In this document: positions 19,933-48,470 of the stretch, one piece after another
Layout of the letters: every line of letters begins with the position of its first letter
Numbering within the stretch: position 1 is the first letter of the stretch
Sequence record: OP292654.1
Direction: 5' to 3' (one strand)
DNA: 64,000 nucleotides
Made by a program: the position numbers and the translations under genes
The notes under the pieces: generated by a model
The model's input: only the letters and a program-made list of their open reading frames with translations
Databases searched by the model: none
What the model was told of the DNA's origin: nothing

Positions 19933-22674
19933 ATGTCGAAAAAAATAATGGGAGACTTGAATGTTTCCCGTAATACAATCGTGAATAGCAAGAATGCTAT
20001 TCGTGACATTAACAATATTACCGCTGATCAGAGTGGGAACATAGCGTTCCCACTTTATACTAAAGAAGAAATTGACCGTATTACAGCAGTATTACCAGTT
20101 TCTCGTGTAGGTACAATGGACTATCTACCAATGAGTATTAACGGTTCATATGAAGGTGCTACAACATATTATGCGTCGAAGCGAATTCTTCCAGTTATTA
20201 TTGAAGACAATGGAACACTAGTTTATCTACGTCCTGGCACAAATGGCAGTACTGATGGATATTATTACTGCTATACTGCTGATGCTCGTAATGTAGCTGA
20301 TATGGCTCCAGTACTTTCAAATACAAAATATGTTCCATCATTCTTTACTAGTAATCATAAATTGATTGATTTTGTTGGAACGAAAGCAAGTGAATTGCTA
20401 TTCATGAAAACAAATAATGGAACTAATGATACATACACAATTGGTCTAACTAATGGTACATTGAATAGTGTTTCACATCAATATGTTGAATTCAACAGAA
20501 CATTATTAGGCAGTACTGATCCTCAATATGCTCATATTGTTGGTAGTACGATTTACATTTGGTGTATTGATTCATACTCAACCACAAGTGCTTTTGATAT
20601 TTCATTATATACTATAAGCGTAGATAATGTTCGCAATGGCGTTACGACTTCATTAGCTAGAGTAACTGGTTTTAGCGGTTCAACGATTTATGGAACATCG
20701 GTTAGTGCGTCAAATACTGTTAGAATTGCTCAGCGTTATATTAGTACTTCAAGTTCAGATAATCCATTTTTGCTATCTGATGCTAATACAAATACTAGTT
20801 TATTCCAGTTGAATACAGATGGTGTTATTCAGGCTGCGTCTAATCCAGACGGTACATCAATTAGAGTAGCATTATTCCATGCTTGGGCGATGAATGCTAC
20901 AGGTATAGCTGGTGTTCAATCACATTGGGGATTAAGTTTAACATATAATATCAGTACTAAAACCTATGTACTAGATAAACCATCTGCTGGACCAATAACA
21001 GTTTCATCAAATGGCAGTTCATTTACTTATACAAACCCATACAACGCAACAATGGAAAATATGAATGGATTCCCAAGTGATTCACAGGGCAATGTTCCAA
21101 CTATATTCCAGACAGCAGATGGGATTGTATTCAGTACGGTGGCTCGTTATATTACATCTCCACAACATAAAATAACTCGTGCTACAATTAATTCATATAC
21201 TAATGCATATGATTCATTGAATTTAACAACACGTACATTAAGTTCTGTTACATTGAAATATGTCGATCCAGTTTATGGTTCAGCATTAGGCGAAAACCTT
21301 ATAAATCCAGTAGTTATTTCTCCTACTAGAATTATGCTTTCATGTAGCGGTAATGATTCTAATGGTTCATTCGGATTTGATGCGAGAGTATATGCTGATA
21401 TCGGTTCAACCAGAACTTACACATATAACTCAATTGTTAGTGGAACCACAATTAATGGATATGCACCACAATCAACTAGAACTAGAGTAGATAATTCAGA
21501 TTTCAAATATACTGGAATGATAACATTAGTTGCCGCTGATGGTACAACACGTTCATATGGTTCATCTTTTATTGAAGGATTAACTAAACCGGCTGGTGGA
21601 TTACTCAATACAAGTACTTTTACATTTGGTACAGGTTATACAATGACAAATACATCATTGTTAACTGCTCTGAAAACCCAAATGATAAATGCTGTTACTA
21701 TTACTGGTACAGTTTTGGAAAGTAAAATTGTTCTGTATTATGTTCCAGATAGTGATTATGGAAAAAGTATTGCTATAGTCTCATTGAGAACTGATACTGT
21801 TGATGGTTCAGGATATAGTGCTCATGTTATTGTTAGTACTGTAGATGTTACATTAAGTGGTCAGAATATTACTGCTCTAAATGCTGCGTCTTCTACAATC
21901 AATGGAGTTAATTCTGGTGTAATTACAATAAACTTGACATATTTTGCTCGTATGGCTGGATTAACTATTGCCAAATATAGTGGATTCTCATATATTGGAA
22001 TTCCTGCCTTATTCAATATGGGCACAAGTGGTAATGCCACATTTAGGTCAATGCTGGGTAAACTCGATGCGTCAAATAATATTGTATCATTGAGAGCAAT
22101 AACTTCTCAGTATTTGAGCGGTGGTACTTCATACGAAGTTGGTGTTCTTCCTGGATTTGGCTTTGGATTGTTTGAAAATGGTGATGTTACTGATTATCAA
22201 ACTAAGCTAGTTTATAAGTATCATGGTACATCTGAAGCTAACTTAGATGCGTTGATAGCTGATCCAACATCATCACCAATAGCACGATATGTGGTTGCTT
22301 CACAAGAAGTTCCACAAGGTTTCAATGTGTATTTCACTCAAGAAATTCCAGTGTTCCTTCATGGTTCTTACTATGAAATGCCAATACAAACGATTAACCT
22401 AACATCTATTCAAGCAAACCCAGCTAACACTACATTCTATTTGTATATAACAATAGTTGAAGGTGCTGCTGTTTATCAGATTAGTACTACACTTCTTTCC
22501 GAAGAATTGTATAGGGTTTATATCGGTACAATTGTTACTGGAGCATCATCTATAACATCAATAAGTACTGAAAAAGTTACACGATTCTTAACTTACAGGC
22601 CAAGTACAACCCAACGTGGTTCTGCTATTCCTGCGAGTACTGGTGTACCTTCAAGTACTGGTACACGTTGGTAA
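19933..22674 (+). CDS. large Ser/Thr-rich virion structural protein, paralog 3
   Basis: Same N- and C-terminal motifs; SD AAGGA. Confidence 0.7.
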   Translation: MSKKIMGDLNVSRNTIVNSKNAIRDINNITADQSGNIAFPLYTKEEIDRITAVLPVSRVGTMDYLPMSINGSYEGATTYYASKRILPVIIEDNGTLVYLRPGTNGSTDGYYYCYTADARNVADMAPVLSNTKYVPSFFTSNHKLIDFVGTKASELLFMKTNNGTNDTYTIGLTNGTLNSVSHQYVEFNRTLLGSTDPQYAHIVGSTIYIWCIDSYSTTSAFDISLYTISVDNVRNGVTTSLARVTGFSGSTIYGTSVSASNTVRIAQRYISTSSSDNPFLLSDANTNTSLFQLNTDGVIQAASNPDGTSIRVALFHAWAMNATGIAGVQSHWGLSLTYNISTKTYVLDKPSAGPITVSSNGSSFTYTNPYNATMENMNGFPSDSQGNVPTIFQTADGIVFSTVARYITSPQHKITRATINSYTNAYDSLNLTTRTLSSVTLKYVDPVYGSALGENLINPVVISPTRIMLSCSGNDSNGSFGFDARVYADIGSTRTYTYNSIVSGTTINGYAPQSTRTRVDNSDFKYTGMITLVAADGTTRSYGSSFIEGLTKPAGGLLNTSTFTFGTGYTMTNTSLLTALKTQMINAVTITGTVLESKIVLYYVPDSDYGKSIAIVSLRTDTVDGSGYSAHVIVSTVDVTLSGQNITALNAASSTINGVNSGVITINLTYFARMAGLTIAKYSGFSYIGIPALFNMGTSGNATFRSMLGKLDASNNIVSLRAITSQYLSGGTSYEVGVLPGFGFGLFENGDVTDYQTKLVYKYHGTSEANLDALIADPTSSPIARYVVASQEVPQGFNVYFTQEIPVFLHGSYYEMPIQTINLTSIQANPANTTFYLYITIVEGAAVYQISTTLLSEELYRVYIGTIVTGASSITSISTEKVTRFLTYRPSTTQRGSAIPASTGVPSSTGTRW

Positions 22675-23391: not shown

Positions 23392-23629
23392 TCATCTGTA
23401 CCAACTTTTGTTTGAACGACACATAAAAGAATGGTACAATGGCTGTGATGAAGTTATTTTACATCATGCTATGTCTATGCCAAATGGCGTTATCATAGCC
23501 GCTTGTGAATTTTACTTCGGTAAAGAAATTGTATTTGCCAATCTTCATATTGAAGTTGATCAAGATTACAATTCTGTGTTTATCGCATATCATGAAAAAC
23601 TACAAAAGTACATTAAGGAAAATCAATGA
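23342..23629 (+). CDS. hypothetical protein
   Basis: ORF track. Confidence 0.6.
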   Translation: MSSKYIKVKKIKHNQPDHLYQLLFERHIKEWYNGCDEVILHHAMSMPNGVIIAACEFYFGKEIVFANLHIEVDQDYNSVFIAYHEKLQKYIKENQ

Positions 23630-24375
23630 ATCTCGGTGATCGCATTAAGCACTATGAAAAAATGGAAACTACTGACAAATTCATGCCAATGCTTCCTATC
23701 GTAGCACGGTTAGATGGTCGGTCTTTTAGTAAGTTCACTAAGAGTATGGTTAAACCATTTGATATTGACATGACAATGATCATGCAAGCCGTCACTAAGT
23801 ACCTGGTTGAAGAATCTGGTGCTGAAGTTGGTTACACTCAGAGTGATGAAATTACTCTGGTATTCTGGCAGCGTGATTATGAAAGTGATGTGTTCTTTGC
23901 TGGCAAAAAGCAGAAGATGGTTTCAGTACTGGCATCATTAGCAACTGCGATGTTCGTTAAACTGGCACTTCAGCATTTCCCTGAAGAATGTTCAAAACGT
24001 TTGCCACACTTCGATTGTCGCGTATTCCAGGTTCCATCACGTTCAGAAGCAACGAACGCAGTACTGTGGCGTGTACAGGATGCCGTGCGTAATAGCATCT
24101 CAATGGCTGCTCACGCGACGTTTGGACATTCTAAGCTTCAGGGTAAGAGTACTAACAACAAGCTTGATATGCTGCTCGAAGCGGGTATTAACTGGAATGA
24201 TTATCCTAAAGCTTGGAAAGAAGGTTCATTCTTCAAACGTCAGAACTACATCAAAATGCATGAAGGAAATGAGGTAATTCGTTCACATGTAACTGAAGTA
24301 CTGGTTAATCAGAAATTCGAAGATCTCAGTACTTTAGACCGTATGCGTGTAGTCTTTGGAGATGAAGAAGCGTAA
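23626..24375 (+). CDS. tRNA(His) guanylyltransferase Thg1 / Thg1-like 3'-5' polymerase
   Basis: RLDGRSFSKFT, YTQSDEITL, FDCRVF, NSISM motifs. Confidence 0.9.
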   Translation: MNLGDRIKHYEKMETTDKFMPMLPIVARLDGRSFSKFTKSMVKPFDIDMTMIMQAVTKYLVEESGAEVGYTQSDEITLVFWQRDYESDVFFAGKKQKMVSVLASLATAMFVKLALQHFPEECSKRLPHFDCRVFQVPSRSEATNAVLWRVQDAVRNSISMAAHATFGHSKLQGKSTNNKLDMLLEAGINWNDYPKAWKEGSFFKRQNYIKMHEGNEVIRSHVTEVLVNQKFEDLSTLDRMRVVFGDEEA

Positions 24376-31561: not shown

Positions 31562-31872
31562 ATAAGATAAAAATGTTTTTTGTGTCTATAGTACTGGCTT
31601 GTACTTTAGCAATCACTGGTTGTTCAACTGTTCCAGTTCAAAATAAGCCAATTATCGAACAAACGAATCTAATACAATTATGTGGTACTGATACTCCAAT
31701 TCCTGAAAATTTTGTCCTAAATGACAAAGGTGAGAAGGTATATAACGGTCAAGAGATGTATCGTGTGCTTCGTGATTGGCAAGACTACTATAACAAGTGT
31801 GCTGCTATGCACAACCAACTTGTTCGTACTATAATTGGTTTACAGGAAATGAAAGAAGTTCCGAAAAAGTAG
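31558..31872 (+). CDS. putative o-spanin (Rz1-like lipoprotein)
   Basis: Signal peptide with lipobox LAITGC. Confidence 0.7.
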   Translation: MNKIKMFFVSIVLACTLAITGCSTVPVQNKPIIEQTNLIQLCGTDTPIPENFVLNDKGEKVYNGQEMYRVLRDWQDYYNKCAAMHNQLVRTIIGLQEMKEVPKK

Positions 31873-40323: not shown

Positions 40324-41589
40324 ATGGCTGAACTCGTAACTGAAGGTCGTCGTCTTGTAACTGTTCGCAAAATCAATGCGATCAATCCAATTCCGAATGC
40401 TGATGCTATTGAAGTAGCAACCATTGACGGTTGGAACGTCGTTATTAAGAAAGGTGAATTTGCGGTAGGCGACTACTGTATGTTCTTCGAAATTGATTCA
40501 TTCCTTCCTGCGAATGATGGACGTTTCGCTTTCCTGGCTGGGAAAGGTACTAAAACTGATGAAAACGGAGTAGAGCGTATTCGTCTACGCACGATCAAAC
40601 TTCGTGGTCAGATTTCTCAGGGTTTGGCTCTGCCAATCAGTGCGTTTTATGAAATCTTCTACGCACTGAACCCTAATGTTCGTTACTTCCTGGCTCCTTC
40701 GGCAAGTGAAGTACTTTCCAATTCTGTTGAAATTCTGGCAGACCTGGAAGATAACCGTCAGGGTCTGGAAAATTTCATCAATGTCACTAAGTACGAACGT
40801 CCTGATGAACGTAATGGTGGCACTGGTGCTGGACGTGCGAAAACGGCTGGTAGCTTCCCAATCTTCATTCCTAAAACTGATGAAGATCGTATCCAGAACG
40901 TTTTCGGAAAGTACAGTCAGACTATGAAAGGTGTACCATTCCGTAAATCTTTGAAACTGGAAGGTTCAAGTCAGACTATTGCTTTCGTAAGCAATCCTGA
41001 CTTCTTCGTAGAGAAGATTGATGATGAACTTAAAGTGTTCAATGAGGAAACTCAAACACTGGAAGTCGCAGAAGTCATTCCTTATCCGTTCCAGTGGGAA
41101 GAAGGTCAGGGTATTGTGTGTTCACGTAACCTCGCACTGAAGTTCGATGAAAGTTCGGCATTCTGGAAAGCAGCACTGAAGGACGACATTATTGAACGTC
41201 TGCGTCAGTACTGTACCGAGAACAACCGCCAGCTTGCTATTCAGGGCGAATGTATGGGTCCAGGTATCCAGGGTAACATCGAACAACTGGAAGAACATCA
41301 GTTCTACGCATTCCGTGTGTGGGATATTGATGCTCAGAACTTCCTGGATGATGCGGAATTCATCGAACTGACTCGTATCCTGGGTCTGACTGTAGCACCG
41401 CAAGGTGAAATTGTGTACTTCTTTGATGAATACAGTACTATCAAAGAAGCTCTGGATTCAGCAGATCATGCGAGTATCGTAGCTCCGATTTGTGAAGGTG
41501 ACGTGTACAAAAGTACTGTAAAAGTGAATGGACAGACTATTCACTTCAAAGTCATCAATAACAAATATCTTCTGAAAGTAGAAGATTAA
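40324..41589 (+). CDS. RNA ligase, Rnl2/DRB0094-like, with N-terminal OB (tRNA-binding-like) domain
   Basis: PIPNADAIEVATIDGWNVV, IKLRGQISQGL, PKTDEDRIQN, motif I KLEGSS, GECMGPGIQGN, EGDVYK, FKVINNKYL. Confidence 0.85.
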   Translation: MAELVTEGRRLVTVRKINAINPIPNADAIEVATIDGWNVVIKKGEFAVGDYCMFFEIDSFLPANDGRFAFLAGKGTKTDENGVERIRLRTIKLRGQISQGLALPISAFYEIFYALNPNVRYFLAPSASEVLSNSVEILADLEDNRQGLENFINVTKYERPDERNGGTGAGRAKTAGSFPIFIPKTDEDRIQNVFGKYSQTMKGVPFRKSLKLEGSSQTIAFVSNPDFFVEKIDDELKVFNEETQTLEVAEVIPYPFQWEEGQGIVCSRNLALKFDESSAFWKAALKDDIIERLRQYCTENNRQLAIQGECMGPGIQGNIEQLEEHQFYAFRVWDIDAQNFLDDAEFIELTRILGLTVAPQGEIVYFFDEYSTIKEALDSADHASIVAPICEGDVYKSTVKVNGQTIHFKVINNKYLLKVED

Positions 41590-41596
41590 GATTTAC

Positions 41597-41620
41597 AGGC
41601 AACTGAAAAGTTGCCTTTTT
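41597..41620 (+). terminator. intrinsic terminator
   Basis: AGGCAACT-gaaa-AGTTGCCT plus T-run. Confidence 0.8.
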
Positions 41621-41633
41621 AAGCGAAAAAAAT

Positions 41634-41663
41634 TTGAAACGAGCCGGAGAAATCTGGTATAAT
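41634..41663 (+). promoter_or_regulatory. sigma70-like promoter, extended -10, 18-bp spacer class
   Basis: TTGAAAC...TCTGGTATAATGTA, as at 32614. Confidence 0.8.
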
Positions 41664-41679
41664 GTAAATCATTAAGAGG

Positions 41680-41970
41680 ATGCTTATGACTAAGCAAGAG
41701 TATTTGGCAGCATTGAAAGTCGGCGATACAGTTAATCGTTTCTTTCATGGTGCTGGTTTTATTACCCAAGGTGATGAAGCCGAAGTTGTCCATTTGACCG
41801 AAAGCCATGTTTGGGTTGATGAAGTGATGCATGATGAATCAAATTATAAAACGGATTCAGTGTACGCTTACAATCGCAAAACAGGTAAAGCAGTAGAAGC
41901 CGCATTTGGTATGTTCCATACATTGGAGTTACCAGGTGAACGTGCTCCTGATTCGGACTATGACGACTAA
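41680..41970 (+). CDS. hypothetical protein
   Basis: ORF track, SD GAGG. Confidence 0.7.
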   Translation: MLMTKQEYLAALKVGDTVNRFFHGAGFITQGDEAEVVHLTESHVWVDEVMHDESNYKTDSVYAYNRKTGKAVEAAFGMFHTLELPGERAPDSDYDD

Positions 41971-42030
41971 CACAAGTTAGAGAAGTGAGTCAACAAATAA
42001 AATTTAACCATTTCTGAGAAGGAAAGTATA

Positions 42031-43545
42031 ATGTCAGCATTTAAAAACGCAGTAAACAACGTAAACACCACAGCTTCACAAAACCGTTCTACAACCGCAA
42101 ATGGTGCGGCATCACTGAAAAGTACGCTGAACCCACTGGTAGATCTGTTCTTCATGATCGGTTCCCTTCGTGGAAAAGATCTCGGCGTGTACAAAAGTTC
42201 ATTTGACGCAGCATACGCAGCTAACCCTACGCTTGCTCTCCAGATGATTCTTTGGGCACGTGACATTCGTGGTGGTGCTGGTGAGCGTAATACCCCTCGC
42301 GAACTTCTGAAGTACCTTGAAGTTAAGCATCCTGAAGCAGTACTGCGTGTAATTCCAGTACTGGCAGATTTCGGTCGTTGGGATGATCTTCTGATCTTCA
42401 AAACTGCCGCTGCTAAAACTCTGGCTTACCAGACAATCGCAGAAGCGTTAACCACTGGTAACGCACTGTGTGCTAAGTGGATGCCTCGTGTTTACAAGTT
42501 CAAGAAGAACGCTCAAGGTGTTGTTGATATGAACACAGAAGCGAACAAAAACCGTGCTGCGAACAACAAAATCGCTCGTGAGATCATGACCACCATGAAT
42601 ATCAACGAACGTGCGTATCGTAAGCTGCTTTCATCTCTGAGCAACACCGTTGAACAGAAGATGTGTGCGAACGAGTGGGAAGAAATCGAATATAGCAAGC
42701 TGCCATCAGTTGCTAGTGCTCGTTATCTGCCAGCGTTCATGAAACGCGATGAAGCTCGTTACCGCGAGTTCCTGGCTTCAATCGAAAAAGGCGAAGTGAA
42801 AGTAAACGCTGGTGCTCTGTATCCATACGATGTAACAACTCGTTTGGCTAATGGTTCTGCCGCTGAAACCCTGGGCGTTGCTCAATGGGAACAGTTGCGT
42901 AACTTCATGGGCGACAACAAAGCTATCCCAATGGTAGATACTAGTTCTTCAATGAACTGTTCTGCGGGTTCTACAGGCATGACTTGTATGAACGTTGCGA
43001 TTTCTTTGGGTCTGTACATTGCCGATAAGCAAGAAGGTGCGTTCAAGGACTTGTTCCTGAACTTCAGTACTCAACCACGCATGTTCGAACTGAAAGGTTC
43101 TAACATTGCTGAGAAGTACCGTGACCTGATGGGCTATCGTGCTGGTCAGTTCTGGGGTGGTAGCACCAACATTCAGGCGGCATTCCGTGAAGTACTGCGT
43201 GTAGCGAAAGCTCAGCAAGTACCAGCAGAACAGATGCCTAAGAACTTGATTGTTCTGTCTGACATGGAATTCAACCCAAGCAATGCGGGTGGTTGGAACG
43301 CTACGGCGTACAACTCTGCGAAAGCAGACTTCGCAGCAGCGGGTTATGAACTGCCAACTATCGTCTTCTGGAACCTTAACGCACGTCCGGGTAACAACCC
43401 TGTTCGTTTTGACCAGAACAACGTAGCTCTGGTAAGTGGTTTCTCTCCAAGCGTTCTGGAAGCAATTCTGAGCGGTGAGGATGTAGATCCAGTGAAGGTT
43501 ATGCTTCGCGTAATCGACGCACCACGCTATCAAGTACTTGGTTAA
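42031..43545 (+). CDS. TROVE/vWA-type protein (DUF2828, Ro60-related)
   Basis: RDIRGGAGER, GRWDDL, CAKWMPR, LYPYD, MIDAS-like VDTSSSM, LSDMEF, VFWNL. Confidence 0.8.
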   Translation: MSAFKNAVNNVNTTASQNRSTTANGAASLKSTLNPLVDLFFMIGSLRGKDLGVYKSSFDAAYAANPTLALQMILWARDIRGGAGERNTPRELLKYLEVKHPEAVLRVIPVLADFGRWDDLLIFKTAAAKTLAYQTIAEALTTGNALCAKWMPRVYKFKKNAQGVVDMNTEANKNRAANNKIAREIMTTMNINERAYRKLLSSLSNTVEQKMCANEWEEIEYSKLPSVASARYLPAFMKRDEARYREFLASIEKGEVKVNAGALYPYDVTTRLANGSAAETLGVAQWEQLRNFMGDNKAIPMVDTSSSMNCSAGSTGMTCMNVAISLGLYIADKQEGAFKDLFLNFSTQPRMFELKGSNIAEKYRDLMGYRAGQFWGGSTNIQAAFREVLRVAKAQQVPAEQMPKNLIVLSDMEFNPSNAGGWNATAYNSAKADFAAAGYELPTIVFWNLNARPGNNPVRFDQNNVALVSGFSPSVLEAILSGEDVDPVKVMLRVIDAPRYQVLG

Positions 43546-43558
43546 TAGCCAATACTAT

Positions 43559-43584
43559 AAAGCCTCACTTCGGTGGGGCTTTTT
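43559..43584 (+). terminator. intrinsic terminator (UUCG loop)
   Basis: AAAGCCTCAC-ttcg-GTGGGGCTTT plus T-run. Confidence 0.85.
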
Positions 43585-43602
43585 CATTTAAAAGGAATTA
43601 AT

Positions 43603-43743
43603 ATGAAAACTCTTCGAAATCACTTCTTAGGCTTTGTAATGATGTACAAAACATCGTTCGCCGTTAACCCTATCATCACAACTCTAGGCACTATTGTAGC
43701 TGCTGGATTTGTCCTATCTGTAGCAAAAATCTTTGGTCTTTAA
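43603..43743 (+). CDS. 46-aa membrane protein (absent from ORF track)
   Basis: Read manually: MKTLRNHFLG...VAKIFGL*; SD AAGGA. Confidence 0.6.
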   Translation: MKTLRNHFLGFVMMYKTSFAVNPIITTLGTIVAAGFVLSVAKIFGL

Positions 43744-43772
43744 TTGACGCCAACGATCTGATGTGCTACACT
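43744..43772 (+). promoter_or_regulatory. sigma70-like promoter
   Basis: TTGACG-N17-TACACT with TG extension. Confidence 0.65.
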
Positions 43773-43797
43773 GATTTTAATTAACTTGAGGTGCATC

Positions 43798-44223
43798 ATG
43801 ACTACTGAATATATCGAAATGGAAGGGTATCTTGAATATGATCCTGACCGTAAAGACATGAAAAAGCGAACTCAGTACTGGTGTGTACTTCAATTGCCAA
43901 ATGATTTGGTCCGATACTACCAGTACTTTCTTCGAACTGAAAAACACATTTATCTTGAAATGCCAGCATGGGGTGCTCACGTAAGTATTATTCGTGGGGA
44001 AAAACCTGATGACGAGCATATTCATTTGTGGAAGAAGTATCACAAGAAGAAATTCAAATTTCGTTTCTTTCCTAATATTGTAGAAGTTAAGGATAAGAAA
44101 CAAAGTGGAAGTTTCTATGTAATCAACTTTGAATGTCCAGAATTATCTGATATTCGTCGTGAGTTAGGTTTACCAGTGTATCGTGATTTCCACATAACAA
44201 TTGGTCGAACCTACTATGATTAA
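43798..44223 (+). CDS. 2H phosphoesterase family protein
   Basis: Two Hx(S/T) motifs: GAHVSII and DFHITIG. Confidence 0.75.
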   Translation: MTTEYIEMEGYLEYDPDRKDMKKRTQYWCVLQLPNDLVRYYQYFLRTEKHIYLEMPAWGAHVSIIRGEKPDDEHIHLWKKYHKKKFKFRFFPNIVEVKDKKQSGSFYVINFECPELSDIRRELGLPVYRDFHITIGRTYYD

Positions 44224-44794
44224 AGAAGTTGCGTACAAAATCCGTGATATGAAAACCGGTCAATTTGTAGAATTACTTTCCGCTAGTGGAAATGTTGTAA
44301 ACTCCACTAACGGAAAGATTTTTGACACATATTCTTCCGCTATGGCATATTTGTATGAATCGCAAAGTGCTATGATGCGTAATAAACGCTATATAAACTT
44401 GAACCGATTTTCAATACATGAACTTAGACTAGTAATTAGTAATACAATTTCAGTACCGAATCTTATCGAGTCAACAATACTAGCTAAACCCGAAGACGAA
44501 GAATATCAAGAGTGGTTTAAATCTATTGTTTCCCAGGCAGTACTGGATGGTTTTTGTGAGGTAGATCAAACCTTGCTTAATTTCGCCTTGACGAACGATA
44601 AATATCATTCTATACTTGTTGAATATGTTCCACCTCATATGCTCCAGTGCCTGGATGAATTTATGAGTGTTGGAATTAATGGCTGTGATCTTGACACATT
44701 AGGGTCAATTTCCTTGACAGCATCGCAGAAACAGCTTAATATGTACGACATAGACAGGCTGTTCGCTGTGAGAACAGAAAAAATTTCGAAGTAG
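44201..44794 (+). CDS. hypothetical protein
   Basis: ORF track. Confidence 0.7.
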   Translation: MVEPTMIKEVAYKIRDMKTGQFVELLSASGNVVNSTNGKIFDTYSSAMAYLYESQSAMMRNKRYINLNRFSIHELRLVISNTISVPNLIESTILAKPEDEEYQEWFKSIVSQAVLDGFCEVDQTLLNFALTNDKYHSILVEYVPPHMLQCLDEFMSVGINGCDLDTLGSISLTASQKQLNMYDIDRLFAVRTEKISK

Positions 44795-44821
44795 TATTCG
44801 TACTATTGTAGGAAGTCCAAA

Positions 44822-44906
44822 GCGACTTTGTGCAAATAAGGTCGCACCGAAGGTTTGTCCTTATTACGCAGAAGAAGCACAAAATGTGTAATAAGGAGGA
44901 ATTTTG
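44822..44906 (+). promoter_or_regulatory. structured 5' UTR occluding the endolysin SD, with an alternative SD-free fold
   Basis: 13-bp stem 44858-44870/44885-44897 covers AAGGA; alternative nested helices 44827-33/44877-83 and 44835-41/44859-65. Confidence 0.6.
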
Positions 44907-45848
44907 TATAAAGCGATACAAGAACTCAAAACTCGTGCTGGATTGAAAACAATCCTAGTAGGTTTTCTGTTGCTTGCCGCTGCATTTGGATTAGGTTTTA
45001 ACTCACATGATCGTACTACATCATCGGCTACTGTTGACACAGTGGTGGTAGTACAACAAGAACCACAATTAACAATTCAAAAGCAACCGCCAGTAGCTCA
45101 GATTATACCTGTACAACCTGAAGCAACTGATAGCAGAAAGCAATACAAAGTACTGAGTGGTGATAGTTTATGGACTATTGCTAACCGTATTAAGCCACAA
45201 AACGTTGAAATAGACGAGTATGTAAAAGTACTAAAAGTGGTGAATAAGGAAGCTGTGATGCATCCTGGTACATTGTTTGACCTTCCTAATGCGGAAGATT
45301 TGAAGGATGTTACTTTACCTGATATTGTACTATTGTTCAGTATTCATGATGAAGAAATACTCACTCATATCAAAAAAGCAGAAGGAACAAGTGAATCCCA
45401 ATCCGTATTAAAACGGCGTTTACTTGGCGGTAAAGTTGGTCCATCTTTTAAAAATGGAAAGTTCTATCCGTATCGTGATAGTACTGGTAACTTCACAATA
45501 GGTTACGGTCATTACATCGGAAAGAGCGAGAAAGACGCAGCAAAATACCGTAATGGTATTACAAAAGGTCAAGCTCATAATCTCTTAATTGAAGATATGA
45601 AACGCACAAGGGATGATTTCATTCTATTACTTAAGCGTAAACGTGCGATGGATTTAACAATTGACCAGCAGCGTGTTCTTTACGAAATGGCTTACACTAT
45701 GGGTACTGATAAACTTGCTAAGTTTAACAAACTCTGGAAAAGTGTTGAAAATAGCAATTCTCGTAAATTCAAAAAAGAAATCAAAAACTCTTTATGGTAT
45801 AACCAAGTAGGTTCAGGCCGAGTTGATATACTACTAAGTAGTCTTTGA
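44904..45848 (+). CDS. signal-anchored LysM + T4-type (GH24) lysozyme, putative endolysin
   Basis: N-terminal TM; YKVLSGDSLWTIA (LysM); KAEG...YRDSTGNFTIGYGH; TTG start with SD TAAGGAGG. Confidence 0.8.
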   Translation: MYKAIQELKTRAGLKTILVGFLLLAAAFGLGFNSHDRTTSSATVDTVVVVQQEPQLTIQKQPPVAQIIPVQPEATDSRKQYKVLSGDSLWTIANRIKPQNVEIDEYVKVLKVVNKEAVMHPGTLFDLPNAEDLKDVTLPDIVLLFSIHDEEILTHIKKAEGTSESQSVLKRRLLGGKVGPSFKNGKFYPYRDSTGNFTIGYGHYIGKSEKDAAKYRNGITKGQAHNLLIEDMKRTRDDFILLLKRKRAMDLTIDQQRVLYEMAYTMGTDKLAKFNKLWKSVENSNSRKFKKEIKNSLWYNQVGSGRVDILLSSL

Positions 45849-45873
45849 TAGTACAATATAAGGGAGTACTTTT

Positions 45874-46218
45874 ATGTTCAATCATACTATTGTTTATAAT
45901 GACAACATTGATGTGTCAGAAGAATTGGAAATGCATACAATTGATGCCTTTCGTAAGGTCGAGAAATTTGTTGGTGAAACTCCAGTAGATTTCCGCACTA
46001 CGTATTCAAAAGAGGGTACTTCATTTAAAGTACATGCTCATGGCACATTTGATGGAACTCAATTTGATGCTCACTCAGTTGACAATGACATTTATAAAAG
46101 TGTTGACCTGATGGTAGCAAAATTGGAATCACAATTCCGCACAGCTAAAAGTAAACGTACTAGTATCGACCGTGATACTATTGTTCAGGCTGAAGACGAA
46201 TCTAGCATTGAGTCGTAA
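45874..46218 (+). CDS. hpf: ribosome hibernation promoting factor (HPF/YfiA family)
   Basis: IDVSEEL...KVEKF...DIYKSVDLMVAKLESQFRTAKSK. Confidence 0.75.
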   Translation: MFNHTIVYNDNIDVSEELEMHTIDAFRKVEKFVGETPVDFRTTYSKEGTSFKVHAHGTFDGTQFDAHSVDNDIYKSVDLMVAKLESQFRTAKSKRTSIDRDTIVQAEDESSIES

Positions 46219-46225
46219 AAACTCC

Positions 46226-46254
46226 TTGACAGAAACGTAACAACGTGCTACATT
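46226..46254 (+). promoter_or_regulatory. sigma70-like promoter followed by terminator hairpin 46257-46287
   Basis: TTGACA-N17-TACATT. Confidence 0.7.
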
Positions 46255-46295
46255 ATAAGGACAGGCAGTGATGCTCTGTCCTTTTTTCGTTTTAA

Positions 46296-46742
46296 GTGGG
46301 GTTGGAAATGACAGATGTTTACAACATAAAAGACATGGAAATTAGGTTCGAATATGATTCATATTCTCCTATGACACGTTGGATATGTACTGTATATTTG
46401 CACAAGATTCGAAAAGTATATCGCTTTATTGATGAAGCAAATCAATATCGTGTAATGTGTGTTTATATGGATATGACATATCCACAAGAACAAATTTACA
46501 AATCCATCCTTGAACGGATTATGCGTTCTGGACAAATGGAGAAATCTGAAATGGCAATGTATGAAGAATATTTTGGTACTGATGATTACTCATTAACTGA
46601 ACGACTTAAGAAACAAAAACAGAACCAATTTGAAGCGAAACGTGAAGCTTTTGAAGCTCATAAAAAAGAGCAATCAAGAATAACTCGTTCTAAGTTAGGT
46701 ATTACTTTTTGGGGTGCGTTAATTGTTGAGGATATTTTATGA
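46296..46742 (+). CDS. hypothetical protein
   Basis: ORF track; ends TFWGALIVEDIL. Confidence 0.65.
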   Translation: MGLEMTDVYNIKDMEIRFEYDSYSPMTRWICTVYLHKIRKVYRFIDEANQYRVMCVYMDMTYPQEQIYKSILERIMRSGQMEKSEMAMYEEYFGTDDYSLTERLKKQKQNQFEAKREAFEAHKKEQSRITRSKLGITFWGALIVEDIL

Positions 46743-46975
46743 GTATTTTCTTTGATGATTCAGGGGCTATTCCAGTAATGCTTGAAGAAGATTGGGGTTT
46801 GGGATGGCCTGATAATAGTCATATTGAAAAAGCAATGCGTTCTCATTTAGAACATATACAGAGTTATACTCCACCACCAAAACGCACACAATGTGACGGT
46901 ACTTTTTGGGGAGAATTGATTAACACTGATATTCTTCACAAAACCAAAAAACGTACTGGCAATTTCGATCTGTAG
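46739..46975 (+). CDS. hypothetical protein
   Basis: ORF track; contains TFWGELINTDIL. Confidence 0.6.
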   Translation: MSIFFDDSGAIPVMLEEDWGLGWPDNSHIEKAMRSHLEHIQSYTPPPKRTQCDGTFWGELINTDILHKTKKRTGNFDL

Positions 46976-46980
46976 GTGAT

Positions 46981-47343
46981 ATGATGGCTATACAAATTAA
47001 CGATATGGTAGTGAATCATATTTCTGAAAAATGTATATATGAAATTCAGTACGGCGAACATGTATTTGAAGTTGATCGTCCATTATTTCATAAAATTTAT
47101 GATAAACATAGTACTTCTCAAGCTTATCGTATATTAAAAGAAATGTTTAAAGATGATAAATTTCTTAAAGGTTCGAAAAAAGTAAAAATGTTGAATATTA
47201 CCAATAAAGAAGAAGTATCATTTTGGTTAGATTTAATTAATAATGATTTGAAAAAACAAATACCATCTCCACCTAAACCGCCTGAGCCTCCTAAAACTCG
47301 TGTAGTTGGTGGAACTAGGCGTGGTGGATTCTGTTTAGAATAA
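46981..47343 (+). CDS. hypothetical protein with Pro-rich tail
   Basis: ORF track. Confidence 0.65.
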   Translation: MMAIQINDMVVNHISEKCIYEIQYGEHVFEVDRPLFHKIYDKHSTSQAYRILKEMFKDDKFLKGSKKVKMLNITNKEEVSFWLDLINNDLKKQIPSPPKPPEPPKTRVVGGTRRGGFCLE

Positions 47344-47354
47344 GAGGAATACAA

Positions 47355-48470
47355 ATGAAAAAGTATATCGTAGGTGGTTTTGTACGTGATAAGATTCTTG
47401 GTCTTCAACCTAAAGACAAGGATTATGTACTGGTCGGTGCTAAACCAAAAGATATTGAATATCTTCAAAGCATTGGTTATAAACAAGTGGGTGCTGACTT
47501 CCCTGTATTCCTGTCACCAGATGGTGATGAATACGCACTTGCCCGTATCGAGCGTAAAACTGGTACTGGTTACGATGGTTTCACCGTTGAAACTCAGGGT
47601 GTTACATTGGAACAAGACCTGTTTCGTCGCGATTTGACGATTAACGCCATTGCGTGGGATATTGGTACTAAAACCCATGTTGATCCATACAATGGTAAAG
47701 AAGATCTAAAGAACAAGGTACTGCGTCACGTATCTGATGCGTTCAAAGAAGATCCTCTGCGTGTTCTGCGTCTGGCTCGTTTCAAGGCTCGTTACTCCGA
47801 TTTCACGGTACATAAAAGTACTGATGATATGGTTCGTAAGATGGTCAAAGATGGTGAAATCAATCATCTGACTAAAGAGCGTGTTTACGTTGAATTTGAG
47901 AAAGCATTCAGTGAAGCGAAACCAAGTATCTTCCTGAAGTACTTGAAAGATATTGGTGCGTTGACAGTACTGATTCCTGGTTTTGAGGCAACTCAAAAAG
48001 AACTGGAACTGATTGATCAAATTGTAAATACAAGCTCAGATTCACACCGTGATGAATTTATTTGGTCTGTTATTCTTTCTAAGTTAACACCAAATAAAGA
48101 TTATGTTGTTGGTGGTATTAAACTGCCAGCACGTTTTGTGAAGTTCAGTAACTTCATTAAAACTCATTCTGAAAGTTTACTGAAATTCCGTAAAAAGAAA
48201 CCGGAAGAAATGGTAGAACTTTTCAGTACTATGAACATCAAAAATAACGGTGGTGAAGATTTTCTTTACAAAGTCACTGAGTACTTCTTAATTCGTCGCG
48301 AGATGGATAATGAACTCGAAGACCTTATTGTAAAGGTATTTGATCGCTTTACTGATGCTCCAGTTGGTGACATTGAAGAAATGGTAAAAACTGGTAAACT
48401 GGAAGCGAAGGATATTCGTAATCACGTTAAGGGTATCCAGACCACCGAAATCAAAAAGATGTTCGCATAA
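47355..48470 (+). CDS. cca: class II tRNA nucleotidyltransferase (CCA-adding enzyme), no HD domain seen
   Basis: YIVGGFVRD, DKDY, DLFRRDLTINA, EDPLRVLRLARF. Confidence 0.92.
   Translation: MKKYIVGGFVRDKILGLQPKDKDYVLVGAKPKDIEYLQSIGYKQVGADFPVFLSPDGDEYALARIERKTGTGYDGFTVETQGVTLEQDLFRRDLTINAIAWDIGTKTHVDPYNGKEDLKNKVLRHVSDAFKEDPLRVLRLARFKARYSDFTVHKSTDDMVRKMVKDGEINHLTKERVYVEFEKAFSEAKPSIFLKYLKDIGALTVLIPGFEATQKELELIDQIVNTSSDSHRDEFIWSVILSKLTPNKDYVVGGIKLPARFVKFSNFIKTHSESLLKFRKKKPEEMVELFSTMNIKNNGGEDFLYKVTEYFLIRREMDNELEDLIVKVFDRFTDAPVGDIEEMVKTGKLEAKDIRNHVKGIQTTEIKKMFA

Follow-up and report, generated by a model that had tools for sequence, protein, structure and literature searches.

How is a lysis gene kept silent that lies among early-type genes and encodes a toxic, membrane-anchored enzyme? 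This question is raised by the endolysin gene XbC2_184 of the Xanthomonas phage XbC2 (OP292654.1, 367,901 bp), which belongs to the genus Mimasvirus of the GAP32/Rak2-like jumbo myoviruses. The stretch of DNA analysed here, referred to as the window, comprises 64,000 nt of this genome and matches it with 100% identity. Coordinates are those of the window (window position = record position minus 62,000), and all features are situated on the + strand unless stated otherwise. XbC2_184 (44904-45848) starts with a TTG codon (44904-06) and is separated by a gap of 109 nt from XbC2_183 (44216-44794), a gene of unknown function. This gap is covered by a cis-acting leader of ~140 nt (about 44788-44922) with four hairpins, in which the Shine-Dalgarno (SD) sequence of the endolysin gene is buried. 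The existence of such an SD lock on the endolysin is well supported. As the best explanation, to which we assign a rough probability of 0.6, we regard the leader as a lock that prevents translation of a lysis gene transcribed early, with relief via a transient or factor-driven alternative pairing.

Burial of the ribosome-binding site

In its ground state, designated fold A, the leader starts with hairpin hp0 (44790-44807; 7 bp with a UUCG loop), which overlaps the TAG stop codon of XbC2_183 (44792-94) with its 5' arm. Hairpin 1 (44822-44845) pairs positions 44822-31 with 44836-45 in 10 bp, including two G-U pairs, below a GCAA loop (-12.3 kcal/mol). It is followed by the SD stem, whose 5' arm, the anti-SD strand (44850-44870; core 44858-70, outer part 44850-56), pairs with a 3' arm (44885-44905) carrying the SD AAGGAGG (44893-99) and the nucleotides U44904 and U44905 of the TTG start. 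Both arms are connected by an A-rich loop of 14 nt (44871-44884), which contains a conserved ACAAAA motif (44879-84) and is complementary to 44827-33. The core of the stem (44858-70/44885-97) consists of 13 bp with one G-U pair. RNAfold adds seven further pairs (44850-56/44899-905), resulting in an extended SD stem of 20 bp with a 1x1 internal loop and approximately -21 kcal/mol. The weak hairpin hp3 (44902-44923; pairing probability 0.87-0.96) contains the TTG start. All helices listed in a preliminary description of this region, which was made from the sequence alone and proposed a two-state RNA switch, are present at the coordinates given there, including the upstream UUCG hairpin and the 13-bp stem burying the SD.

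Fold A is the minimum free energy (MFE) structure of 44785-44925 (-44.6 kcal/mol, z = -6.29) as well as of 44815-44910 (-36.6 kcal/mol, z = -6.85), and in neither test did any of the dinucleotide shuffles underlying the z-scores fold as well. At equilibrium (44750-44945) pairing probabilities of 0.97-0.98 and 1.0 were obtained for hairpin 1 and the SD stem, respectively, and the SD bases 44894-97 are unpaired with a probability of 0.000-0.007. Opening of the ribosome-binding site (RBS) costs 13.85 kcal/mol, which is rank 3 among the 81 annotated genes of the window (median 5.1, 90th percentile 10.3). Other costly openings were observed at the gene starts 1843 (XbC2_118), 9363, and 1399 with 13.9, 12.6, and 13.6 kcal/mol, respectively. 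The start at 1843 is also preceded by an AAGGAGG SD, and these three starts may be further occluded sites.

An RNA thermometer was ruled out, since the stem is far too stable and the ensembles at 28 °C and 37 °C are identical. A scan of 43500-46500 flagged no intrinsic terminator or attenuator within the leader; the U run at 44902-05 takes part in the extended stem, with GGAA lying between it and the core stem. In a cmscan search of 44000-45600 against Rfam 15 with E-values up to 10, the leader remained unmatched and chance-level matches to snoRNAs and miRNAs were obtained elsewhere. A ligand acting through a known riboswitch, one of the triggers initially considered, is therefore not supported.

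Occurrence and covariation of the leader

Four named genera and the unclassified Munch/7t3 group share this leader in front of their endolysin gene. It is present in XbC2, Kaldavass, CBB, and GAP32 of the Mimasvirus, in BF, the pEa_SNUABM phages, and fHe-Yen9-03/04 of the Eneladusvirus, in the Munch/7t3/fENko-Kae01 group, in EJP2, 121Q, A4, UE-S1, and CMSTMSU of the Asteriusvirus, and in RaK2. An EJP2-like leader occurs in the unclassified Erwinia phage Hallingskeid, and several metagenomic contigs carry the leader as well. Between XbC2 and CBB, GAP32, BF, or Yen9 the leader is 90-97% identical, compared to 50-75% for the upstream open reading frame (ORF). In the MFE structure of every homologue folded, i.e., XbC2, CBB, GAP32, BF, Yen9, 7t3, EJP2, 121Q, A4, and RaK2, the SD or the start codon is paired, and the sequences engaged in this pairing differ completely between genera. 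XaC1 (locus L033, 592-720) possesses an orthologous endolysin gene lacking the conserved block of the leader described below. In this case, the SD-like AGGG pairs with AAACCC just upstream, an independent way of reaching the same occlusion.

With a covariance model of fold A, a single sense-strand site was identified in the window, and every genus yielded its orthologous site. The sole other match in the window is a weak shadow on the reverse strand (E = 0.049). In an alignment of 20 distinct sequences, which was fitted to the fold A model and thereby favours this fold, 92% of the cells are paired and 20 of the 36 fold A pairs show compensatory changes. These are distributed over hp0 (5/7), hairpin 1 (5/10), the SD stem (9/13), and hp3 (1/6). 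None of 500 shuffles reached the observed level, and slid controls resulted in 38-51% pairing. Covariation in homologous untranslated regions, suggested beforehand as a check of the structure, thus speaks for conserved fold A helices, and burial of the SD is conserved and covaries across genera. For example, hairpin 1 is formed by GCGAC/GUCGC or GAGGC/GCCUC, depending on the genus. A hairpin with a quite different sequence occupies the position of hp0 in 7t3, EJP2, L022, and A4, whereas the predicted hp0 is marginal in 121Q and UE-S1 (-0.5 and -0.7 kcal/mol, respectively). A paper describing this leader was not found in the literature.

An invariant hairpin competes with hairpin 1

The leader contains an invariant block of 26 nt (44808-44833), which folds into a hairpin of its own, hp-alpha, with 9 bp (44808-10/44831-33 and 44812-17/44824-29), a G/G mismatch, a 6-nt loop, and -8.8 kcal/mol. 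Since hairpin 1 uses as its 5' arm the strand that forms the 3' arm of hp-alpha, both hairpins are mutually exclusive. Except for two transitions (44812 A/G and 44825 A/G), the block is invariant in Mimasvirus, Eneladusvirus, the 7t3 group, and EJP2, with a loop length of 6-9 nt, and it is still recognisable in 121Q and RaK2. One copy was observed per window, per locus, and per scanned genome. A relaxed scan of IMG/VR with this block yielded 44 loci. The fold A model is matched by the orthologous sites only, and the remaining loci are consistent with a rough chance estimate for so short a pattern. As an antisense partner of the block, a single chance-level match (10/11) was found within the window, at 20118.

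In all 20 distinct homologues, including 121Q and RaK2, hp-alpha folds with 100% of its positions paired, and only changes from U-A to U-G occur. It is retained in 121Q despite a deletion of 1 nt and in RaK2 with a different outer stem. From an unfitted alignment, RNAalifold selected hp0, hp-alpha, the SD stem, and hp3. In case of position 44825, A and G share the same U partner in hp-alpha due to wobble pairing, while the partner in hairpin 1 covaries between U and C. As this pattern satisfies both structures, both hp-alpha and hairpin 1 appear to be maintained. The preliminary description was right in that an alternative pairing exists, but the better-conserved alternative, hp-alpha versus hairpin 1, was not part of it.

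If hp-alpha holds 44822-33, the released strand GUCGC (44841-45) can pair with GCGAU of codons 4-5 (44913-44917). This helix closes around the SD stem and is part of the MFE structure in XbC2, Kaldavass, BF, L022, and the 7t3 group. In RaK2, a closing helix GCCA/UGGC covering the start codon occurs alongside hairpin 1, and the equivalent in 7t3 covers the start codon as well. The probability of the closing helix drops to 0.01 when the folded segment extends further into the gene. If 27 nt of the coding region are included, the MFE structure of close relatives alternates between two forms, both of them closed: hairpin 1 with the SD stem and hp3, or hp-alpha with the closing helix and the SD stem. 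Further long-range helices that appear as coding sequence is added, e.g., 44814-19/44939-44, were rejected as not above chance. Within the first ~35 nt of the endolysin gene (44904-44940), synonymous sites are nearly invariant in 12 relatives and a GCG alanine codon is present in all genera, which suggests an RNA-level constraint extending into the gene.

Two other explanations involving the block were considered. According to the first, a mini-ORF at UUG 44828 (UUG UGC AAA UAA) is translated and the ribosome remodels the leader. Its UUG and the next codon are invariant, and in the 7t3, EJP2, and 121Q groups GAGG is situated 2-3 nt upstream and the mini-ORF enters the anti-RBS strand. Nevertheless, such a leader peptide is very improbable, as the SD is missing in XbC2 and all its Mimasvirus and Eneladusvirus relatives, the length varies from 3 to ~27 codons, the peptide is not conserved, and the start codon lies inside hairpin 1 or hp-alpha. 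Equally remote is an element acting at the DNA level, i.e., an operator or a minus-strand promoter (TGCACA, 18 nt, TACAAT, 44834 to 44805). The block does contain an inverted repeat (AAAGTC/GACTTT), and a consensus scan flags the promoter-like site on the minus strand. Among the relatives, however, the spacing of half-sites and hexamers shifts by 1-3 nt, the change from A to G preserves an RNA wobble pair but breaks the DNA palindrome, and due to its G-U pairs the hairpin can form on the + strand only, the strand on which all genes of this region are located. Likewise, minus-strand ORFs (44736-44921 and 44864-45040) or a minus-strand promoter were rejected, since indels of 1-9 nt in the relatives break frames and spacing.

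Fold B and the SD-free state

The preliminary description had contrasted fold A with a fold B that re-pairs the same bases in an outer (44827-33/44877-83) and an inner helix (44835-41/44859-65) and sets the SD free. The inner helix is based on an SD mimic, AAUAAGG (44835-44841), which is identical to 44890-96 and can pair with the anti-SD at 44859-65. Both helices exist as perfect complements, yet they are weak: the core helices of fold B amount to -9.8 kcal/mol versus -29.9 kcal/mol for fold A, and the best structure containing fold B to -28.5 versus -44.6 kcal/mol. In XbC2, fold B is located 16-20 kcal/mol above fold A with a predicted saddle ~27 kcal/mol above fold A, and its helices have an equilibrium probability of 0.000. 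These energies and pair probabilities rule out a balanced thermodynamic two-state switch in XbC2. The presumed improbability of such helices by chance holds to a moderate, not an extreme, degree in XbC2, with p = 0.04 for the duplex of SD mimic and anti-SD against shuffled anti-SD arms and p = 0.008 for the duplex of 44822-34 with the loop of the SD stem against shuffled loops. The latter is not significant in CBB, GAP32, and BF.

What survives of the proposed anti-anti-SD switch is the ability of the SD mimic to pair with the anti-SD. If the SD is forced open, XbC2 folds into hp-alpha plus the SD mimic:anti-SD helix, 12.1 kcal/mol above the MFE. The same combination is the MFE structure of nascent prefixes ending at 44863-44893, in which the anti-SD is already made and the SD strand is not. 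The SD mimic:anti-SD pairing was above chance in nine of the Mimasvirus and Eneladusvirus leaders tested (p = 0.001-0.04); for loci L019, L021, and L022 p-values of 0.075-0.10 were obtained. It grows to 13 bp in CBB and to 17-19 bp in GAP32 and L018. In L019, a change from G to A is compensated by a change from C to U within this helix, with the real SD unchanged. Covariation in an alignment fitted to the alternative fold was discarded as evidence for this helix because the placement of rows is unreliable outside of Mimasvirus and Eneladusvirus.

Several observations weigh against a release of the lock by alternative pairing. The open state of XbC2 is situated 12-16 kcal/mol above fold A with zero equilibrium probability, and the gap between fold A and the open state is not conserved, ranging from 1.3 (GAP32) to 13 kcal/mol among relatives. 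In the 7t3, EJP2, 121Q, A4, and RaK2 groups the anti-SD alternative is not above chance, and the anti-SD of locus L039 carries three uncompensated changes. According to findpath, displacement of the mimic by the SD strand has to overcome a barrier of only ~4.4 kcal/mol, because the SD strand has a free toehold, and the kinetic window may therefore be very short. When coding sequence is included, hp-alpha accompanies the closing helix, which means more occlusion instead of relief. When the 12 closest relatives were aligned without fitting, no more than three covarying pairs were detected in fold A and one in the alternative. Moreover, neither a transcriptome or proteome time course for Rak2-like enterobacterial or Xanthomonas phages nor a trans-acting factor or transcription start data for these phages were found in the literature.

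Some of these points are in good agreement with a static attenuator, in which the leader permanently damps the toxic endolysin, the TTG start and the 4-nt SD spacing allow a trickle of translation, and no switch exists. The alternative pairings would then be by-products of two similar SD/anti-SD hairpins, and the block would serve mRNA stability or processing. In favour of this reading, fold A prevails at equilibrium, the energy gap to the open state differs widely between phages, the mimic is displaced over a low barrier, the mimic:anti-SD pairing is significant in two genera only, and L039 does not compensate. In addition, the A-rich 14-nt loop could provide a ribosome standby site. Nonetheless, we consider a purely static leader rather unlikely. 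RBS structure strongly limits expression, and a stem of -15 to -21 kcal/mol would allow almost no unaided translation. A merely stabilising hairpin could covary freely, which leaves the cross-genus invariance of 26 nt unexplained, and the anti-SD strands of CBB, GAP32, and L018 have evolved extra complementarity to the invariant block.

Promoters and transcription of the endolysin gene

A sigma70-type promoter (44714-44742; TTGACA, 17 nt, TAATAT) was identified by a consensus scan within the 3' end of XbC2_183, ~155 nt upstream of the endolysin start codon. As the predicted start is near 44749, the resulting transcripts carry the whole leader. In 12 relatives of Mimasvirus and Eneladusvirus the -35 hexamer is TTGACA (11) or TTGACT (1), the spacing is 17 nt in all cases, and the -10 hexamer remains TAnnAT, while the overlapped codons and amino acids as well as the spacer vary. 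In Asteriusvirus and RaK2 a separate promoter of the form TTGAC-N17-TAnnnT precedes the conserved block by 20-60 nt. The first 50 kb of the window contain 82 annotated genes, all of them on the + strand, and the named ones mostly belong to nucleotide and RNA metabolism. On account of this same-strand block of early/middle type and the conserved, host-type sigma70 promoter, the endolysin mRNA is probably made long before lysis, with promoter specificity in these phages derived from motif prediction only. The published CBB promoter tables and supplement do not list a promoter near orf187, the CBB orthologue.

Given the resemblance to the lysozyme gene e of phage T4, long early transcripts could be locked while an internal, phage-specific middle or late promoter generates transcripts lacking the 5' arm of the SD stem. 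Gene, context, and occlusion correspond to gene e, and according to the CBB paper a late sigma factor resembling gp55 is encoded by Rak2-like phages, whose late motif is ATAAATA. Besides, the invariant loop motif ACAAAAT (44879-85) weakly resembles a -10 element. We consider such a promoter choice unlikely, since neither TATAAATA nor ATAAATA (<=1 mismatch) is present in 44600-44960, the CBB tables contain no matching promoter, and a CBB-type middle promoter (TGAAACG...TATAAT) is absent inside the leader. The invariant block was rejected as a general promoter motif, because the block and its halves are single in the 64 kb and single in each relative's locus. Hence, transcription start choice, another of the initially proposed triggers, lacks the required late-promoter motif inside the leader.

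The only ATAAATA near the gene, a late-promoter-like motif, is located at 44598-44604 within XbC2_183, 300 nt before the endolysin start. As it lies upstream of the leader, transcripts originating from this motif would keep the whole leader. Matches to the "divergent" promoter type of CBB and GAP32 (TGGAACG or TGAAACG, ~13 nt, TGnTATAAT) were observed at 313 and at 41635, the latter just upstream of XbC2_179.

Proposed mechanism

In the mechanism that we favour, the lock with relief by alternative pairing, fold A would prevail at equilibrium. The extended SD stem would bury the SD and part of the TTG, hp3 would cover the rest, and the membrane-anchored endolysin would be kept essentially untranslated, following the logic of T4 gene e. 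Because the T4 device, a late promoter in the DNA of the stem, is absent, a release via the 5' module of the leader is favoured over an internal late promoter. During transcription hp-alpha would form first and hold the strand otherwise used by hairpin 1, which would leave the SD mimic (44835-41) free for the anti-SD. Two options are conceivable: a short co-transcriptional window with a free SD, comparable to the MS2 maturation gene, or a sequence-specific factor that binds the invariant block and stabilises the SD-free state late in infection, comparable to Com of phage Mu. In accordance with the latter layout, hp-alpha is an invariant upstream hairpin situated 24 nt 5' of the inhibitory SD stem. 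It is tempting to go one step further and to regard the leader as an undescribed family of multi-state regulatory RNAs of Rak2-like jumbo phages, in which hp-alpha senses a phage-encoded or host factor and the mimic relays the signal to the anti-SD, so that endolysin translation is timed without recourse to transcription, but this extension is tentative and should be viewed with some doubt.

Activation or inactivation could also be brought about by processing, if RNase III, RNase E, or a phage endoribonuclease cut the SD stem or the single-stranded block and thereby remodelled the leader. The extended stem of approximately two helical turns with its 1x1 internal loop is compatible with this idea, and after cleavage hp0 and hp-alpha might act as protective 5' hairpins. 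However, cleavage of the stem would also cut the SD strand, and we judge processing quite improbable.

The endolysin and its genomic neighbourhood

XbC2_184 is annotated as a lysozyme and contains a phage lysozyme domain (PF00959, E = 1.2e-9). A LysM match is weak and under the cutoff (17.8 bits). A hydrophobic, Gly/Ala-rich segment is situated at approximately residues 16-32, and in the GAP32 record one transmembrane segment is noted for its endolysin. The orthologue of CBB has been described as the endolysin of this phage, with an anchor of the signal-arrest-release (SAR) type and toxicity upon expression. By sequence, XbC2_184 combines an N-terminal membrane anchor with a muralytic domain, as in a SAR-type endolysin with putative release from the membrane.

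The endolysin gene is surrounded by genes for an RNA ligase, a DUF2828/vWA protein, a ribosome hibernation factor (HPF), a CCA-adding enzyme, a nudix hydrolase, and a glutaredoxin, each of which is encoded on the + strand. Among them, an RNA-repair/tRNA-related cluster (40324-48470) comprises the RNA ligase, the DUF2828/DUF7788 vWA-type protein, and the CCA-adding enzyme; a tRNA-His guanylyltransferase gene is located at 23626-24375. The hibernation factor homologue (45874-46218; PF02482, E = 8.9e-12) is situated directly 3' of the endolysin gene. The annotations show the same arrangement in Mimasvirus, BF, fHe-Yen9-04, the Asteriusvirus phages 121Q, A4, and UE-S1, and XaC1, but not in RaK2. 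An O-spanin gene is annotated at 31573-31872. As it precedes the endolysin gene by 13 kb, the lysis genes are scattered and do not form a cassette, and the annotation shows no holin in the vicinity of the endolysin gene.

Significance

The leader represents a conserved, unannotated family that would exert a known kind of control, the T4 gene e logic, and includes an unexplained invariant hairpin. An account of lysis timing in Rak2-like jumbo phages was not found in the literature. With a conserved RNA lock, it would be understandable why a toxic membrane-anchored endolysin encoded among early-type genes does not lyse the host prematurely, and the gene e principle would also hold for a distant phage group that uses another release mechanism. 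With one copy per genome, support by covariation, and no Rfam match, the leader is well suited as a candidate for a new family of cis-regulatory RNAs, and its invariant hairpin offers a concrete bait for an RNA-binding regulator. The leader may also account for failed expression attempts with these endolysins and could serve as a tight translational off-switch.

Comparison with known systems

The closest counterpart is the leader of the T4 lysozyme gene e, together with the similarly built leaders of soc, 49, and I-TevI (reviewed in PMC3014915, which cites McPheeters et al. 1986). In both cases a lysozyme gene is located among earlier genes and subject to early read-through, and the SD and start codon are placed in a stem, which avoids premature lysis. 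Sequestration of SD or start on long transcripts, as in gene e, was found in XbC2 and all homologues. In T4, however, the late promoter lies in the DNA of the 5' strand of the stem, whereas the XbC2 leader has no such motif. The XbC2 leader is also much larger, with four hairpins, an invariant 5' hairpin, an SD mimic, and a sigma70-type promoter of its own.

In the 5' untranslated region of the maturation gene of the levivirus MS2, delayed folding and a kinetic trap give a brief window for translation, as a metastable hairpin of the nascent RNA retains the strand complementary to the SD (PMC4615214). Similarly, the final fold pairs the SD with an upstream complement, and the nascent XbC2 RNA is predicted to prefer hp-alpha and the mimic:anti-SD helix until the SD strand appears. 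Unlike MS2, the XbC2 leader is part of a DNA-phage mRNA and not of a replicating RNA genome, the sequences are unrelated, and with a low predicted exit barrier (~4.4 kcal/mol) a lasting trap is doubtful. In phage Mu, the small protein Com recognises, by sequence and structure, a hairpin upstream of the inhibitory mom stem and opens this stem late (PMC6483171). The position of hp-alpha beside the SD stem fits this arrangement, a resemblance of layout only. No Com-like protein or binding motif was identified, with no search aimed at candidates and 64 kb of the 368-kb genome in the window.

Toxin mRNAs of type I toxin-antitoxin systems adopt successive metastable structures that sequester the SD, also during transcription (PMC6733600). 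These mRNAs likewise encode lethal membrane proteins and are silenced by several alternative anti-SD pairings. In contrast to them, neither an antisense RNA nor a 3' processing signal was found for the XbC2 leader, and the genetic context differs. With riboswitch and attenuator platforms of the anti-SD/anti-anti-SD or ermC type, the XbC2 leader shares a succession of helices that exclude one another and lead up to the SD, but it differs from these by the missing Rfam match, aptamer-like conserved junction, and conserved leader peptide.

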